The notes beneath the pieces are model-generated. The model was not told the origin of the DNA. It ran no database searches and was given only the letters and a program-made list of their open reading frames with translations. This document shows positions 2,867-9,849 of a DNA stretch of 10,582 nucleotides, one piece after another. The translations under genes and the position numbers were made by a program. Each line of letters opens with the position of its first letter. The first letter of the stretch is position 1. Location of the stretch: IMG/VR virus record IMGVR_UViG_3300033830_000020, positions 1 through 10,582 of that record. One strand, given 5' to 3'.

Positions 2867-3139
2867 TTAAATTAACTTGAAGAATATAGATCTTATGATT
2901 TTTGAGATTTTGAGATTATATTTTTTTGCCAATTCTTCAAGTTTTTGATAGTATAGCTCATCAATTGTGAAAAAAACACGCTCATCATAGTTATCTGTAC
3001 TTTCTATTGGCTTAAATTCATCTTGATGGTTTAGAATTTTGTCAATTTCTTGTTTTATTAACTCTCTTTTTTCGTAAAAAAGAGATTTGTATCTTGAAGG
3101 AATTCTTAATTCGATATATTTGTTCTTTTGGCGCTTCAT
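2867..3139 (-). CDS. Ribbon-helix-helix DNA-binding protein with an extra N-terminal strand-helix unit (possibly AvtR-like architecture)
   Basis: C-terminal RHH pattern RVFFTIDELYYQKLEELAKKYNLKISKIIRSIF; N-terminal YIELRIPSRYK strand-helix. Divergent from rep with a shared promoter element. Confidence 0.65.
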   Translation of the reverse strand: MKRQKNKYIELRIPSRYKSLFYEKRELIKQEIDKILNHQDEFKPIESTDNYDERVFFTIDELYYQKLEELAKKYNLKISKIIRSIFFKLI

Positions 3140-3171
3140 ATATTTCTTTATTTTTATAAAATATATAAACG

Positions 3172-3193
3172 TGACATATACATTTAAATGTCA
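3172..3193. promoter_or_regulatory. Back-to-back bidirectional promoter TGACA-N12-TGTCA for the 90-aa RHH gene and rep
   Basis: TGACATATACATTTAAATGTCA reads TTTAAA+TGTCA on + (towards rep) and TGTATA+TGTCA on - (towards the RHH gene). Confidence 0.6.
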
Positions 3194-3954: not shown

Positions 3955-4116
3955 ATGGAGAAGACAGAAAAGAAAGAAAGAATTACTTTTGGTATACATA
4001 TAGATAAAGAGTTAAAGAAAAGACTAAAGATTTATTGTGTAAACAACAATATAACCATGACTGAAGCTATAGAGGAGGCATTAGAGGAATATTTACAAAA
4101 GAGGCAATCAAAATGA
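3955..4116 (+). CDS. svtR: SvtR-like ribbon-helix-helix repressor (53 aa: MEKTEKKERITFGIHIDKELKKRLKIYCVNNNITMTEAIEEALEEYLQKRQSK)
   Basis: Manual translation (below the ORF-track cutoff). FGIxxDKxLKxRLKxYCxxNNxxxTxAIEEAxxEYLQKR matches SIRV1 ORF56b/SvtR as I recall it. Has its own RBS and promoter. Confidence 0.88.
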   Translation: MEKTEKKERITFGIHIDKELKKRLKIYCVNNNITMTEAIEEALEEYLQKRQSK

Positions 4117-4289
4117 GAGTAATAAGTATAAAAATTCCAGAAAAACTCCTTGATGAACTCGATAATTATGCTATGAATCATAGATTTCATAGATCTGAAG
4201 TTGTTAGACTGGCAATTATAGAATTTCTAGATAATCATGCAAGAAACAAAGAAAATAATGAAGTTAGGGTTGAAAAAATTACGTTTTAA
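4113..4289 (+). CDS. CopG/MetJ-type RHH protein (58 aa: MRVISIKIPEKLLDELDNYAMNHRFHRSEVVRLAIIEFLDNHARNKENNEVRVEKITF), probably SIRV2 P59b-like
   Basis: Manual translation; ISIKIP strand and RSEVVRLAIIEFL helix; ATGA overlap with the svtR stop (translational coupling). Confidence 0.85.
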   Translation: MRVISIKIPEKLLDELDNYAMNHRFHRSEVVRLAIIEFLDNHARNKENNEVRVEKITF

Positions 4290-5499: not shown

Positions 5500-5616
5500 A
5501 ATTTTAATATAAATGACTGACAATTAAATAGCTTTTTAAAAAATTGAAGATAGTATATTAGATAGTTAGTAATTCCCAGAATTATCCCAATTTTTCAACT
5601 TACATTATAATCAGCT

Positions 5617-5639
5617 CATATACAAAATATTATGTATAT
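5617..5639. repeat. 23-bp near-palindrome CATATACAAAATATTATGTATAT, copy 1 (upstream of the capsid gene)
   Basis: Identical to 9024-9046; dyad symmetry about a central AATATT. Confidence 0.8.
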
Positions 5640-5700
5640 AGCTTTTGTCTTGAATTTTACGCCAATTTCAACAATTATTATTCATCATATTACATATACG

Positions 5701-5716
5701 GCGTGAAAATTTATAT
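5701..5716 (+). promoter_or_regulatory. Major capsid protein promoter (BRE GTGAAAA + TTTATAT)
   Basis: Canonical archaeal BRE/TATA about 32 nt upstream of ATG 5748; lacks the TGTCA element. Confidence 0.6.
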
Positions 5717-5747
5717 TGTAGAAATTAAAATTTTTAATTGACCAAAA

Positions 5748-6152
5748 ATGGCGAAAGGTCACACACCAAGATCATTTTCGCAAAGATACGCAAAGTGGCA
5801 AGCTAAGTTCACTTCATTTAGTAATCCAACAGTTTCTTCAACAATTTTAACTAATGTATCTCCAGTTGCACAACAAAATTTCCAAACTAATGTACCTAAA
5901 TTCACTTCAGTAAATGAACAAGTTTCAGCGGTTTTAACTCAATATGGAATTACTGGGCCTCAAAGAGCAATTTATCAAGGTTTCGGATTAAAAATTGCTA
6001 GAGCTTTAAATAGAATTGGATCAGGCCCGGCTTTAGTAAATATGATAAACGGTTTAAAAGCTTATTACATAAATGCCTTTAATGCAAATCCTACAGTATT
6101 AGACGCTGTAACTAATATAATCACCGGTTCACCAACTGGATACGTGAGCTAA
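5748..6152 (+). CDS. mcp: Rudivirus major capsid protein (SIRV2 P134/gp26 family)
   Basis: 134 aa, MAKGHTPRSFSQRYAKWQAKF...NIITGSPTGYVS, nearly identical to the SIRV coat protein as I recall it. Confidence 0.97.
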   Translation: MAKGHTPRSFSQRYAKWQAKFTSFSNPTVSSTILTNVSPVAQQNFQTNVPKFTSVNEQVSAVLTQYGITGPQRAIYQGFGLKIARALNRIGSGPALVNMINGLKAYYINAFNANPTVLDAVTNIITGSPTGYVS

Positions 6153-6171
6153 AAAGTTTAAAGCTATTCTA

Positions 6172-6192
6172 TTTTTTTATTTTTTCTATTTT
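6172..6192 (+). terminator. Oligo-T archaeal terminator after the capsid gene
   Basis: Consecutive T runs shortly after the stop codon, between convergent genes. Confidence 0.5.
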
Positions 6193-6227
6193 AGGATTTA
6201 AAATTTTAAAAAAATTACTTTTAACTT

Positions 6228-6398
6228 TTAGTCATCATCTTCAACTTTTGTTTCAATATATTCGTAAGTTTTTTTACTAATCCTTTTACAATCGCTTAAT
6301 TTTAAATTTTTATTATGTCTTTTTATATGGTTAATCATGCTATTTCTGTTTCTGCTTATGAATCCGCAAACTGGACATTCGTATAAAAACATTCCCAT
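6228..6398 (-). CDS. Small C2H2 zinc-finger protein (about 56 aa), SIRV2 P55-like
   Basis: YECPVCGF...MINHIKRH finger. The ATG at 6416 in the track lies within the promoter motif, so ATG 6398 (or 6392) is preferred. Position between capsid and glycosyltransferase matches SIRV order. Confidence 0.8.
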   Translation of the reverse strand: MGMFLYECPVCGFISRNRNSMINHIKRHNKNLKLSDCKRISKKTYEYIETKVEDDD

Positions 6399-6402
6399 AT
6401 GA

Positions 6403-6432
6403 TTTTTTAGTGTCATGACAAATAAAAAAGTT
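6403..6432. promoter_or_regulatory. Overlapping divergent promoters centred on the perfect palindrome TGTCATGACA (6411-6420)
   Basis: Minus strand reads TTTTTTATTTGTCAT 18 nt before ATG 6398; plus strand reads TTTTTTAGTGTCAT about 20 nt before ATG 6435. Confidence 0.6.
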
Positions 6433-6434
6433 GT

Positions 6435-7442
6435 ATGAAAACCGTAATTTTAACCATGAATTATTCATCTATACGAAATGTAGCAGAGGATATAGCTTAC
6501 GTTTTAAGAAATCATGGAGAAATTGTAACAATTTCAACAAATCCATATTTAATTCCACAATCTGATAAATTAATTGTTTTTATTCCATTTCATCCACCAT
6601 CTTTAAATCCATATCTTTACACATTTCATGAATTTCGCGGAATTAAGTATTTTTATACAACTTGTGATGGTCAGCCTAATTTAAATATAGTAAATCAATA
6701 TCTATTAAAAGACATAAAATTCATTCCAAATTCAAAATTTACAGCTCAGAATTTACAAGATGTAGGTCTAGATGTAGATTTGCCAGTTTTTCATGGCATT
6801 AATTTTGAAATTGTAGAAAAAGCTGAAAAATTAGCTATTCAATTAAAGCAAAAATTGGATAAAGATTTTCCAAATACTGTGAAATTTGGGATTGTTAGTG
6901 GTTTAACTAAGAGAAAAAATATGGATTTAATGCTTAAAGTTTTCCAAGAGATAAATACTAAAATTCCAGAATTAGCTAAAAAAGTTCACTTCTTTGTTAT
7001 CTCTCATAAACAATTTAAAGATTTTGAAGTTCCTGAAAATGTACATTTTGTTTCAGAATTTGGGTTAAATCCTAGAGAATATATATTTGCATTTTATAAA
7101 GTTATGGATTTTACAATTGTTCCTAGCGGTACTGAAGGTTTCGGGATGCCAGTTCTAGAATCTATGGCCATGGGAACTCCAGTAATTCACCAATTAATGC
7201 CTCCATTTGATGAATTTACAAGTTGGCAGTGGAATTTATTAATTAAATCTTCTGAAGTTGAGGAATATTACGATAAAGATCATGGACAAAAATGGAGAAT
7301 TCACAAATTTGACATTCAAGACATGGTAAGTGCAATATTAATAGCTAGTGAGTTACAAGATAGAGATGAGAGAAGTAAGAATTTGAGAGAATTAGCTAAG
7401 AGATATGATATTAATAATTTATATGTTAGATTCTTAGAATAG
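6435..7442 (+). CDS. GT-B fold (GT4/group 1) glycosyltransferase, SIRV2 P335-like
   Basis: 335 aa; VFHGI, KRKN and PSGTEGFGMPVLESMAMGTPVI (E-x7-E) motifs. Confidence 0.92.
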   Translation: MKTVILTMNYSSIRNVAEDIAYVLRNHGEIVTISTNPYLIPQSDKLIVFIPFHPPSLNPYLYTFHEFRGIKYFYTTCDGQPNLNIVNQYLLKDIKFIPNSKFTAQNLQDVGLDVDLPVFHGINFEIVEKAEKLAIQLKQKLDKDFPNTVKFGIVSGLTKRKNMDLMLKVFQEINTKIPELAKKVHFFVISHKQFKDFEVPENVHFVSEFGLNPREYIFAFYKVMDFTIVPSGTEGFGMPVLESMAMGTPVIHQLMPPFDEFTSWQWNLLIKSSEVEEYYDKDHGQKWRIHKFDIQDMVSAILIASELQDRDERSKNLRELAKRYDINNLYVRFLE

Positions 7443-7448
7443 AAAAAT

Positions 7449-7469
7449 CGAAAAATTTATGAATGTCAT
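7449..7469 (+). promoter_or_regulatory. BRE-TATA-TGTCAT promoter (CGAAAAATTTATGAATGTCAT)
   Basis: Same architecture as the svtR promoter; 25 nt upstream of ATG 7494. Confidence 0.6.
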
Positions 7470-7493
7470 AATATATATAATTATCGTGATAAC

Positions 7494-7622
7494 ATGAGTG
7501 AGATAGTGATAGAATGTGAAAATTTAGGAAAGTTTCATGTAAATAAGGAAAATGGTTTATTAATTAAAAATATAATAAAAATGTGTAATGATTATGGTCT
7601 AACGGTCAAAGTGGTGGAATAA
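7494..7622 (+). CDS. Small hypothetical protein (42 aa: MSEIVIECENLGKFHVNKENGLLIKNIIKMCNDYGLTVKVVE)
   Basis: Manual translation; own promoter and GTGA RBS-like element; TAA directly abuts the ATG of the next gene (TAAATG). Confidence 0.65.
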   Translation: MSEIVIECENLGKFHVNKENGLLIKNIIKMCNDYGLTVKVVE

Positions 7623-7922
7623 ATGCCGAAAAAGTATTATTGCTATTTATGTAAAACAAAACTTGTTGGAAAAAAGGAATTTAAAAAACATGCTGTAAAA
7701 CATTTTGATGGACTAAGGTGTCCATATTGTAATATGAGAACTATGAATTTATTTATACACTTATCATTTTATCACATCAAATTCAAGAAAAAAATGCTAT
7801 TTCATAGAGATTTAGCGATACTAGTAAAGGAAGCAAACAGTTTAAGTATTTTAGATGACCCAGAATTAAAATTAAGTAGATTTGAAAAATATCATATAAA
7901 AAGAATGATGAATAAGTTATAA
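7623..7922 (+). CDS. Double C2H2 zinc-finger protein
   Basis: CYLC...HAVKH and CPYC...HLSFYH fingers; very basic. Confidence 0.8.
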   Translation: MPKKYYCYLCKTKLVGKKEFKKHAVKHFDGLRCPYCNMRTMNLFIHLSFYHIKFKKKMLFHRDLAILVKEANSLSILDDPELKLSRFEKYHIKRMMNKL

Positions 7923-7946
7923 TTCTTTTTTCTTGTTATATTTTTT

Positions 7947-8144
7947 TCATTTTTTGTTTTCTGAATTTTTGCTTAATAAAACAGATATATCTTTGCTAAT
8001 TTCTTCAGATATATTTTTTATCATTTCTAAAGCTTCTAATATTTCATCTTCTTTAAGATCTTCATTTTCATTAATTTCATTAATTAATCCAAGTTGTAAT
8101 TCAAGTAAAACCTCAAATTTTATTAAATCTATCTTTTTTACCAT
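7947..8144 (-). CDS. 65-aa acidic helical protein, tandem paralog B
   Basis: Ungapped alignment to 8151-8348 with 26/65 identities (manual count). Confidence 0.8.
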   Translation of the reverse strand: MVKKIDLIKFEVLLELQLGLINEINENEDLKEDEILEALEMIKNISEEISKDISVLLSKNSENKK

Positions 8145-8150
8145 AGTTCA

Positions 8151-8348
8151 TCACTTTTTATTTTGTGAATTTTCTTTTACTATAAGTACTATTTCTTTAT
8201 CAATATCAGACATTATGCCTTTGGCACTCATTAGCAATTCTATTATATCTTCATCACTTAGAGCTTTATTATTTGCAATTTCTTCAATTATATCATAAAG
8301 CCATTTTGTCAATATTTTAATTTTTACTAAGTCTATATCTTTAACCAT
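8151..8348 (-). CDS. 65-aa helical protein, tandem paralog A
   Basis: Paralog of 7947-8144; TGTCAT promoter motif at 8376-8388, 28 nt upstream; GTGAG RBS-like element. Confidence 0.8.
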   Translation of the reverse strand: MVKDIDLVKIKILTKWLYDIIEEIANNKALSDEDIIELLMSAKGIMSDIDKEIVLIVKENSQNKK

Positions 8349-8385
8349 TTTCTCACGTAAATAGAAATTTAAAATATGACAAATA

Positions 8386-8613
8386 TCAAGTTTTACCTAG
8401 TCTTATTTTTATTTCTTCAATTTGTTTTTTTAATTCATTTTGATTTATCTTTAGTTCTTCAATTTCTGTTTTCAAATTTTGCAATTCTGAGTTTACAATT
8501 TCTTTTACTGCATCTTTTAGAGCTTGTTTTATTTTCAAATAAAGTTGAACAATTGCGAATAATGTAGTTAGAAATGTAGAAATTGTAGTCAGAATAAGAG
8601 TTATTTCACTCAT
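8386..8613 (-). CDS. Membrane-anchored coiled-coil protein (about 75 aa)
   Basis: N-terminal TM helix (ITLILTTISTFLTTLFAIVQLY) and heptad-rich C-terminus. GGTGA RBS at 8622-26 favours ATG 8613 over GTG 8625. Overlaps the stop of the 122-aa gene. Confidence 0.75.
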   Translation of the reverse strand: MSEITLILTTISTFLTTLFAIVQLYLKIKQALKDAVKEIVNSELQNLKTEIEELKINQNELKKQIEEIKIRLGKT

Positions 8614-8974
8614 CTTCATGCTCACCTATTTCTTCTTCTAAATTATCTAAATTTAAATCTTTATCTTCTTTGAATTTTTGATATACTGAATCTACTTGTT
8701 TAGCGTAAGGCTGAGGATAGACTACTCGAAAATCTGAAATGCCAATTCTATTAGTTTCGGGATCTTTAGCTATTAAAAATTGGAAATAGAAAGTAAATCC
8801 AGGAATATATAAATCTACAACCATAGGTAATTCTGCATTTTTTAAAACTATAATTGAATGAGGTAAATATTTTGATAAACCATAAATTTGTCCTTGTAAT
8901 TCTAATTCTCGAATTTTATCTATCGCGATTCTTACGGGACCGAAAATATTCGCAAACTCATCTTTAACTTGCAT
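8606..8974 (-). CDS. Hypothetical protein (122 aa), probably a conserved rudiviral core gene
   Basis: Clean ORF with globular-looking sequence and acidic tail; TTTATTTA TATA-like box about 25 nt upstream; coupled to the downstream membrane protein. Confidence 0.75.
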   Translation of the reverse strand: MQVKDEFANIFGPVRIAIDKIRELELQGQIYGLSKYLPHSIIVLKNAELPMVVDLYIPGFTFYFQFLIAKDPETNRIGISDFRVVYPQPYAKQVDSVYQKFKEDKDLNLDNLEEEIGEHEDE

Positions 8975-9023
8975 AATTATTTATTTCACAAAACAAGAAT
9001 AAATAAACTCAAAGCCAATTTGC

Positions 9024-9047
9024 CATATACAAAATATTATGTATATG
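9024..9047. repeat. Near-perfect 24-bp palindrome CATATACAAAATATTATGTATATG, copy 2
   Basis: First 23 bp identical to 5617-5639; only one mismatched pair in the dyad. Confidence 0.8.
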
Positions 9048-9071
9048 AGTTTGTCTGTTTATGCGTAAAAA

Positions 9072-9092
9072 GTGATGAACAAAGTTCATCAC
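9072..9092. repeat. Perfect 9-bp inverted repeat GTGATGAAC-AAA-GTTCATCAC
   Basis: Directly visible; lies just upstream of the BRE at 9099. Confidence 0.75.
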
Positions 9093-9098
9093 AGCATG

Positions 9099-9140
9099 AG
9101 CGAAAGATTTATATATTTAGATTTCGAAATGTATAATGGG
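9099..9140 (+). promoter_or_regulatory. Strong BRE-TATA promoter, duplicated class (AGCGAAAGATTTATATATTT...TGGG), copy 1
   Basis: 34/42 ungapped identity to 9579-9620; the ATGs at 9148 and 9628 align at the same offset. Confidence 0.75.
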
Positions 9141-9147
9141 GTTAAAT

Positions 9148-9501
9148 ATGACAAATAAAAAAGTTCAAACCAAATCTCAAGTTAAATCTTATTTTTGTAA
9201 ATTATGCGATTTTATTGCAAATGATGAAAGTGAGTTAGAGTTTCATTACAAAATGGCACATGAAGAAGATAGTGATATTTCTGAAGAATTTCAAGTTGTC
9301 TATTTAAGGAAAAAAGAATATGAAGAATACATGAAAAATGAATATGAAAGAATTTGCAAAAGCGGAAGTTGTAAAATACGCCGTGAAATTAACATAGAAA
9401 ATGATAAAAGTGAAGTAAGAAGATTATACAAAGAATATTGCTCAACATGTGAATTGAAAAAATTTTTGGTTGACGAATTAAAGCAAAATGGAAAAATGTA
9501 A
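9148..9501 (+). CDS. Zinc-binding protein (about 117 aa): C2H2 finger plus a second Cys4-like site
   Basis: CKLC...HYKMAH finger; CKSGSC...CSTC. Start moved from 9136 to 9148 by alignment with the sister promoter; 9136 remains possible as a leaderless start. Confidence 0.78.
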   Translation: MTNKKVQTKSQVKSYFCKLCDFIANDESELEFHYKMAHEEDSDISEEFQVVYLRKKEYEEYMKNEYERICKSGSCKIRREINIENDKSEVRRLYKEYCSTCELKKFLVDELKQNGKM

Positions 9502-9578
9502 ATTTATTCTTTCTTTATTTTTTTATCTCTAATTTTTTTCATCTTTGTAATAATATTTCTAGTTTTTGATATAAATGA

Positions 9579-9620
9579 AGCGAAAGATTTTTATATTTCG
9601 ATTCCTAATATTATATTGGG
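9579..9620 (+). promoter_or_regulatory. Strong BRE-TATA promoter, duplicated class, copy 2
   Basis: AGCGAAAGATTTTTATATTTCGATT...TGGG; homologous to 9099-9140. Confidence 0.75.
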
Positions 9621-9627
9621 AAAAGAA

Positions 9628-9849
9628 ATGTCACTAAAAGAAGTTGAAGAAAAAGTTATTAAGTTAGCACATGAATTTGCTCAAAAATATGAAAAAGAAA
9701 TCTTAGAGTTAAATGAATATGAATTAATAGCATATATAAATTCAAAATTAGATTATGAATCTTGGAAATATTTTAATTTTTATCAACCAAAATTGTTAGC
9801 TTTATTTATAAAAACCGTGAAAGAAGACCTAGAATCTCAAAATAAATAA
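9628..9849 (+). CDS. Small acidic helical hypothetical protein (73 aa, MSLKEVEEKVIKLAHEFAQKY...)
   Basis: ATG 9628 preferred over TTG 9616; stand-alone unit with its own promoter and a T-rich terminator after 9849. Confidence 0.75.
   Translation: MSLKEVEEKVIKLAHEFAQKYEKEILELNEYELIAYINSKLDYESWKYFNFYQPKLLALFIKTVKEDLESQNK

Follow-up and report, generated by a model that had tools for sequence, protein, structure and literature searches.

The DNA discussed here, called the window below, is the complete IMG/VR virus record IMGVR_UViG_3300033830_000020, which is 10,582 nucleotides (nt) long and is estimated to represent 34% of its genome. It derives from a Sulfolobus rudivirus: the DNA is 81-85% identical to that of the Yellowstone viruses SIRV4-7 and the isolates V3, V60 and V65, and the genes of the window map one-to-one on genes of SIRV2. 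Two intergenic regions of the window, one beside the major capsid protein gene and the other beside a homologue of the open reading frame (ORF) ORF110, contain the same palindromic sequence of 23 nt. This paper describes the palindrome, its occurrence in other rudiviruses and the proteins which may recognize it. Comparison of the sequences makes it fairly probable that the palindrome is the operator of a virion-gene regulon common to three rudivirus genera.

The palindrome and its two copies in the window

A sequence-only reading of the window had pointed out an identical 23-mer in two long divergent intergenic regions, and both parts of this statement proved correct. The 23-mer is found without mismatch at 5617-5639 and 9024-9046, although only about 0.01 matches are expected by chance, and the observed count was reached in 0 of 200 shuffles. 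The interval with copy 1 (5500-5747, 248 nt) separates an ORF103c-like gene on the minus strand from the capsid gene on the plus strand, and the interval with copy 2 (8975-9135, 161 nt) separates an ORF110-like gene on the minus strand from an ORF for a zinc-finger protein of 121 amino acids (aa) on the plus strand; they rank as the longest and the fourth-longest intergenic regions of the window. Copy 2 forms a 24-bp palindrome (9024-9047) with arms of 8 bp and one mismatched central pair, while the outermost (last) pair is missing in copy 1. When the window is searched with the position weight matrix (PWM) described below, three matches reach at least 10 bits, against 0.08 in an order-2 Markov null. 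Folded as a hairpin, the palindrome has an energy of -4.6 to -5.2 kcal/mol at 37 °C.

On the other hand, conservation does not extend to the exact agreement of the two copies: L014, a close relative, has two homologous sites which are not alike. Therefore, what is conserved is the motif family and not the identity of two copies, which, as far as the sequences tell, is incidental variation within the family or the result of local conversion.

Capsid promoter

Copy 1 precedes the capsid ATG by 108 nt and a second, degenerate site by exactly 60 bp, so the two sites are referred to as the distal and the proximal capsid site (coordinates are collected in Table 1). The extra half-site CATATAC noticed before at 5693-5699 is accounted for by the degenerate proximal site, of which it is a remnant. 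When 43 capsid upstream regions are placed in register with the ATG, the proximal site occupies positions -71 to -50 and adjoins a conserved block of the TFB-recognition element (BRE) and the TATA box. In most relatives this proximal site is the best conserved copy. The distal site stands exactly 60 bp above the proximal one in many North American viruses, and most North American relatives, as well as ARV3, have a site in the column of copy 1. Column identities over 31 distinct capsid upstream sequences are 0.84 for the proximal site (0.89 for its left half), 0.81 for BRE/TATA and 0.74 for the distal site, compared with 0.65 for the spacer and 0.51 for the region farther upstream.

Some of the companion motifs reported earlier are also conserved. 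The sequence GCCAATTT, seen at 5661 and 9014, occurs four times in the window against 0.66 expected, and belongs to a CAAT-type box which is conserved beside the site in relatives; its CAAT core is at least 0.9 identical across the 31 capsid upstream regions, and similar boxes are found 5' of the sites in Italian viruses. The motif GCGTGAAA at 5701 is the conserved capsid BRE, whereas its supposed counterpart GCGTAAAA at 9063 is not conserved in relatives. TTTGTCT does follow both copies as was stated, but at different distances (+4 and +3), and its three occurrences are what chance predicts (3.1). In addition, the capsid leader TTGACCAAAA at 5735-5747, just before the ATG, has a column identity of 0.90 in most rudiviruses, which equals the conservation of the promoter, and may be a translation or RNA-stability element.

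RNA-seq contigs of SIRV2-infected cells from two studies (four runs) were mapped on the SIRV2 capsid region. For two runs of one study, the contig starts fall 5-9 nt ahead of the capsid ATG, and in all four runs no contig covers the 240 nt upstream of the SIRV2 capsid gene, including the palindrome. Measured from this RNA start, the SIRV2 palindrome would lie at about -61 to -40 and the TATA centre at about -25, which is supportive only, since contigs are poor evidence for RNA ends. The capsid gene is the viral transcript most represented in these contigs, whose depths are not quantitative.

ORF110 promoter

Copy 2 is the promoter-proximal site of the ORF110 homologue, and the corresponding site is found at -72 to -51 in all Usarudivirus and Icerudivirus contigs. 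A box GCCAATTTGC stands between the palindrome and the TATA box, and in relatives this box is a perfect 10-bp palindrome, GCAAATTTGC. SIRV4 has no 121-aa gene on the opposite side, and the site nevertheless remains beside its ORF110 homologue; therefore, the site belongs to the ORF110 promoter. Long RNA contigs cross the ORF110 site in three of the four runs, for which read-through from ORF488 or carry-over of DNA is possible.

Distribution in rudiviruses

The relatives were scanned with the 23-mer and then with a symmetrised PWM of 22 positions, using order-2 Markov nulls. A scan of relatives had been suggested in the earlier reading, and the palindrome is conserved in three genera with fixed positions against BRE and TATA. 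The motif family is a palindrome of 22-24 bp, roughly C-ATATACAT-W-ATAT-W-ATGTATAT-G, and spans Icerudivirus (SIRV1-3), Usarudivirus and the hoswirudiviruses of Italy; each genome of the Icelandic, North American and Italian rudiviruses has 3-7 copies. Matches of at least 10 bits number 10 in SIRV2 (0.34 expected) and 6 in SIRV4 (0.16 expected). In the window, SIRV4 and SIRV2 all such matches lie between real genes, one SIRV2 match being within "ORF76", an annotation which overlaps the capsid promoter, and the strong copies of the two genomes mapped in detail are all intergenic.

Each match of at least 10 bits is 25-50 nt from the start codon which it faces or is a second site farther upstream in the same interval, the exception being one weak pair in the SIRV2 terminal repeats. 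The start codon is 48 nt away at the capsid gene, 41 nt at ORF399, 50 nt at ORF269, 26-41 nt at P564 homologues and 25 nt at the P488 homologue of SIRV4; at ORF110 it is 50 nt away in the window and equally in SIRV4 and SIRV2. The Icelandic SIRV1, SIRV2 and SIRV3 and the Yellowstone viruses bear the site at one set of promoters, namely those of the capsid gene, the ORF110 operon and the P564, P488/ORF154, ORF269/ORF176 and ORF399 homologues.

All 22 positions of the motif are conserved, the central ATAT among them. SSRV1 and MRV1 have an identical 22-mer upstream of the capsid gene, including its off-symmetry centre, and the capsid gene of ARV3 has a symmetric variant of the palindrome and a second site 60 bp upstream. 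The symmetric variants ATATTCAT..ATGAATAT and TATACCT..AGGTATA preserve the dyad. Paired sites are 60 bp apart at the capsid gene (Usarudivirus, ARV3) and 58 bp apart at P564 (Icerudivirus). Each of the three Icelandic viruses also has second sites at fixed spacings, of 58 bp upstream of ORF562/564 and 114 bp upstream of ORF399, a parallel to the 60-bp pair of North American capsid promoters. Among IMG/VR contigs, those with several sites are all rudiviral but one, a metagenome-assembled genome (MAG) of a giant virus, and the remaining matches are single and lie in AT-rich giant-virus and phage contigs.

The hoswirudivirus SSRV1 carries a variant beginning ATATTCATAATATT at 22781-22802 and further copies at 2304, 10944 and 17830; this hoswirudivirus variant precedes a TFB-like gene, an ATPase operon, pyramid-protein/P564-type genes and a methyltransferase gene. 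The regulon thus seems wider in hoswirudiviruses and may be linked to the viral TFB.

Host genomes and literature

A degenerate 20-mer derived from the motif was scanned against 47 Sulfolobaceae genomes (about 106 Mb) picked by their Sul7d gene. No exact match was found in this set, and one mismatch gave 10 sites against 5 for a reversed control, while in viral genomes, which are about 35 kb long, 1-4 sites match exactly and 3-6 with one mismatch, and the reversed control gives none. The density of sites accordingly differs about 1500-fold between the viruses and the host family. A sample of 400 genomes from the phylum of a Nitrososphaeraceae MAG also gave no match, which has little weight as the taxonomy of the sample is unlabelled. 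No description of the palindrome family or of the regulon was found in the searchable literature, older subscription literature being outside this search; word searches for a rudiviral late-gene activator or palindrome returned nothing relevant, and no searchable paper was found in which the motif is printed together with SIRV.

Promoter classes and gene content of the window

The rudiviral GTC promoter element (Kessler 2004, as cited in PMC5569661) is a GTC trinucleotide shortly 3' of the TATA box. About ten promoters of the window have a TATA box followed by TTTGTCA(T), for example at 266, 2675, 3923, 4909, 5197, 5518, 6416, 7464 and 8377. The capsid and ORF110 promoters are without this element, which about ten others have, so the palindrome is an element separate from it. 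The earlier observation that the capsid promoter and the promoter of the 122-aa ORF110 homologue lack the TGTCA element holds for the window, but does not extend to all relatives, as the promoters of the P564 and ORF269 homologues there have the palindrome and the GTC element together. A further CATATAC which had been noticed in the rep promoter at 3175 is present, but as a lone half-site and without a PWM match; it sits between two opposed GTC elements in the divergent promoter of rep and a 90-aa ORF. These GTC elements (3170-3193) form an inverted repeat TGACAT..N10..ATGTCA around CATATAC.

Near-identical promoter blocks are located at 9088-9125 and 9578-9610, each consisting of AGCGAAAGATTT(T)TATAT and then a TTCGA-type tail, and precede the 121-aa C2H2 zinc-finger ORF (9136) and a 77-aa ORF (9616), respectively. 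They look like the strong early promoter class of rudiviral anti-defence genes described in PMC11065993; an early anti-defence function of both accessory ORFs is therefore possible. Judged by sequence, the window thus has three promoter classes: GTC, palindrome and early-like.

The gene string downstream of copy 2 ends in tandem 65-aa paralogues (7947-8144 and 8151-8348, both on the minus strand), which belong to a single PHROG family, phrog_10862, and for which no SIRV2 homologue was detected. A PDB sequence search gave no match for the ORF110 homologue.

Table 1. Coordinates of the palindromes, promoter elements and genes; positions refer to the window except in the last row
Feature	Position	Strand	Remarks
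Palindrome copy 1 (distal capsid site)	5617-5640	.	22-mer core 5618-5639, 27.9 bits
CAAT-type companion box GCCAATTTCAAC	5661-5672	+	between distal and proximal capsid sites
Proximal capsid site, degenerate	5678-5699	.	11.5 bits; adjoins BRE
Capsid BRE	5701-5709	+	
Capsid TATA box	5710-5717	+	no GTC element after
Palindrome copy 2	9024-9047	.	promoter-proximal site, 50 nt upstream of ATG at 8974 (-)
GCCAATTTGC box	9014-9023	.	between palindrome and ORF110 TATA box
TATA box of ORF110 homologue	8998-9007	-	no GTC element after
Major capsid protein gene	5748-6152	+	134 aa; 90% identity to SIRV2 ORF134
Gene string downstream of copy 2	7947-8974	-	ORF110 homologue, ORF84c homologue, two 65-aa paralogues
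ORF110 homologue	8606-8974	-	122 aa
ORF84c homologue	8386-8625	-	
90-aa ribbon-helix-helix-like ORF	2867-3139	-	C-terminal Pfam RHH_3, E 0.001, below cut-off
SvtR	3955-4116		SIRV2 mapping
gp21/aCcr1	4113-4289		SIRV2 mapping
ORF207 nuclease, ORF436 ATPase, ORF131b homologues	in window		SIRV2 mapping
ORF119c Rep, ORF98 pyramid protein, dUTPase, ORF103c homologues	in window		SIRV2 mapping
ORF55 zinc finger, ORF335 glycosyltransferase, ORF488 C-terminal part	in window		SIRV2 mapping
Site pairs in Icelandic viruses	SIRV1 5203, 5317; SIRV2 8623, 8737; SIRV2 23679, 23737		

Candidate regulators and known systems

Only two DNA-binding ORFs of the window are detectable in all three motif-bearing genera, gp21 and the 90-aa ORF, which resembles ribbon-helix-helix (RHH) proteins. 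The latter is conserved in Usarudivirus, Icerudivirus and hoswirudiviruses, is annotated as a "putative transcriptional regulator" in SSRV1 (ORF05-93) and falls into an unannotated gap of the SIRV1 and SIRV2 RefSeq records (SIRV2 9480-9722); it would be a third RHH protein of the virus. It was not detected in SMRV1, a virus free of the motif, and a PDB sequence search gave no match for it.

SvtR (SIRV1 gp08) has the consensus ATnnTTCAAnAnnnnnAAAATG and represses ORF1070 and its own gene (PMC5569661). The SvtR and AvtR operators resemble the present sites in that a small viral regulator acts on imperfect inverted repeats near structural-gene promoters, possibly with co-operativity between several sites (PMC5569661). 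As a candidate for the palindrome, however, the SvtR operator was rejected: ATnnTTCAAnAnnnnnAAAATG with at most 2 mismatches has three matches in the window, which is chance level, and none near 5617 or 9024. There is no palindrome in the intervals directly upstream of the tail-fibre gene ORF1070 and the SvtR gene, and SvtR is not detectable in the palindrome-bearing hoswirudiviruses.

The aCcr1-box, AGTATTA / TGTATTAT, is bound by SIRV2 gp21 and by host aCcr1 (PMC9976892). gp21, an RHH protein of the rudiviral core set, occurs in all viruses which bear the motif, and the box has TGTAT in common with the palindrome arm. The box is, however, non-palindromic, and the gp21-bound promoters of gp17 and gp20 are of the TATA+GTC class without the palindrome; binding of gp21 to capsid-type promoters is not reported in PMC9976892. 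This box was also rejected, as GTATTA occurs eight times in the window and never within 5600-5720 or 9000-9070. TGTATTA is found, among the sites, in the P564-proximal site of SIRV1-3 only.

The Aca8-controlled early promoter block of anti-defence genes (Xie et al. 2024, PMC11065993) is likewise a virus-specific conserved sequence which defines a temporal class of rudiviral promoters, but it surrounds the core promoter of early terminal genes, whereas the palindrome class comprises core and virion genes. Non-early rudiviral promoters are mentioned there as "data not shown" (PMC11065993).

More distant parallels come from upstream activators whose dyad sites adjoin the core promoter on its upstream side, in some cases as pairs, and which recruit the basal machinery to a gene class. 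Mor/C-type proteins are late activators of phage Mu. Ptr2 of Methanocaldococcus is an archaeal upstream activator (as cited in PMC1635249). Both are functional analogies only, and no protein homologue was identified.

Interpretation

The palindrome is filed here as a promoter-proximal dyad operator, a known type of element, as it has the dyad, the over-representation, the intergenic location, the fixed position against BRE/TATA and the cross-species conservation of a generic archaeal operator of this kind. The symmetry, the 22 conserved positions, the symmetric variants and the pairs spaced by 58-60 bp point to a protein reader with twofold symmetry. A sequence-specific protein would bind the 22-24 bp palindrome as a dimer or as two dimers, and the two 23-mers of the window would be two operators within one transcription regulon. 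A protein bound at about -61 to -40 would most likely help TBP (the TATA-binding protein) and TFB (transcription factor B), or RNA polymerase, to load, and this help would lead to co-ordinated and very strong expression of the virion-module genes; the sites that occur in pairs, as at the capsid promoter (distal and proximal), suggest that binding is co-operative. When the palindrome was first noticed it was proposed to be an upstream activating site for a late structural-gene regulator. A cis-regulatory site upstream of structural-gene promoters is strongly supported by the comparison of three genera, while activation, which seems more likely than repression, and the "late" timing of the regulon are inferred.

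The dimeric regulator is probably encoded by the virus, a viral factor being somewhat more likely than the host protein Sta1, and the best candidate would be an RHH protein, particularly that of the 90-aa ORF. The full proposal, that one virus-encoded regulator, for which this ORF is the best candidate, switches on the virion-gene regulon through the 24-bp operator with co-operation between paired sites, is put forward tentatively, as possible rather than probable.

Several observations speak against the reading as a virion-gene operator. Not all members of the family have the site: it is absent from ARV1 and SMRV1, SBRV1 and SRV have weak matches only, and ARV2 has a degenerate copy. The geometry is not rigid, as the distance to the TATA box is about 10 nt at SIRV capsid genes, 16-17 nt at ORF110 and 17-19 nt in hoswirudiviruses. 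The promoter-proximal half is often degenerate, and the capsid-proximal site of the window is poor. The published motifs of SvtR, gp21/aCcr1 and Sta1 do not fit the palindrome, and half-site variants showed no clean co-variation with the beta-strand residues of three viral RHH proteins. A site adjoining the BRE could serve a repressor equally well, and the pattern of the strict host scan leaves room for a host factor with looser natural sites. Furthermore, only some of the regulon genes are known to be structural, whereas the ORF110 operon, ORF269 and ORF399 have no known function or a non-structural one.

If a host factor is considered, the palindrome may be a high-affinity site of Sta1, a winged-helix dimer of the Lrs14 type, which the viruses have borrowed to boost the capsid and related promoters. 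Proteins of this type occur across the Sulfolobales, which fits sites in viruses of Saccharolobus, Metallosphaera and Acidianus. In Kessler et al. 2006 (PMC1635249), Sta1 is pulled down by the SIRV1 promoter fragments 134, 399 and 56, of which 134 and 399 contain the palindrome and 56 does not contain it in full; only promoters 134 (most strongly) and 56 are activated in vitro. On promoter 134 the dimer gives two footprints, each about 20 bp long: the first is on the core promoter and the second about 30 nt upstream. The core-footprint oligonucleotide Reg2 corresponds to SIRV1 11102-11131 and the palindrome to 11072-11093, so that the upstream footprint, whose distance is stated there only as about 30 nt, may fall on the palindrome or beside it. 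Promoter 134 of this sister virus offers a dimeric protein, an upstream footprint and activation. Yet Sta1 binds, in addition, to the core promoter and to a promoter that has no full palindrome, and its affinity for the viral oligonucleotide tested is about 10 micromolar (PMC1635249). Its viral consensus in the same source, ATNT-N8-WNAT, matches the window core (ATAT-N8-TTAT) and SIRV1 11072-11087, the left part of the palindrome; being loose, it also matches SIRV1 11060-11075 and several other places in the same fragments and is given little weight, and the conservation of 22 positions far exceeds it. On the host sso0777 promoter Sta1 needs TTATT, CANGNA and TTATT (PMC2175319), an arrangement not present in the palindrome, in whose 22-24 bp no TTATT is found. 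As the 47 host-family genomes, too, lack an exact match, Sta1 as the intended reader is regarded as unlikely. The family-wide palindrome and its regulon are not described in Kessler et al. 2006.

A repressor would use the same operator in the opposite sense, an early viral or host protein beside the BRE restraining the virion genes until it is titrated or displaced. Most characterised regulators of archaeal viruses are indeed repressors, many of the RHH type (PMC5569661), the site directly adjoins the BRE at capsid promoters, and pairs at 58-60 bp permit looping or spreading as proposed for SvtR and AvtR. But the site lies upstream of BRE/TATA without overlap and its promoter-side half is the less conserved one, the capsid gene heads the viral transcripts in the infected-cell contigs (with the reservation on depths made above), and the sole experimental effect reported for a palindrome-bearing fragment is activation, all of which make repression quite unlikely. 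The remaining explanation places the function in the DNA itself: nucleation of the capsid or packaging, replication or resolution through a cruciform, or a block for recombination of modules. It was also the alternative offered in the sequence-only reading, as a packaging, nucleation or replication signal, and is not sustained. A palindrome in a linear double-stranded DNA virus which encodes a Holliday-junction resolvase, copies at borders of gene modules and identical 22-mers in distant viruses could be cited for it. However, each of the 3-7 copies per genome belongs to a promoter and keeps a fixed distance from the start codon, no strong copy is found at a terminus, where rudiviral replication starts, and degenerate copies retain one half and the centre rather than the potential to pair. 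The hairpin amounts to only about -5 kcal/mol at 37 °C and would be implausible at about 78 °C, so the DNA itself is unlikely to have a structural role, and this explanation as a whole is highly improbable.

Significance

The timing and scaling of virion-gene expression in archaeal viruses are largely unknown, and the regulators studied are mostly repressors of single genes; the only rudiviral promoter class defined so far is the early one (Aca8). An operator common to the capsid gene and about five other promoters gives a concrete regulon, a bait for affinity experiments and targets for editing in SIRV2. The best response in the original Sta1 experiments came from the SIRV1 capsid promoter, for which the operator may provide an explanation. 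In addition, the operator would be a compact, strong and probably switchable promoter module for the genetics of Sulfolobales. If the regulator is indeed encoded by the virus and switches the regulon on, it would be the first dedicated activator of structural genes known for an archaeal virus.

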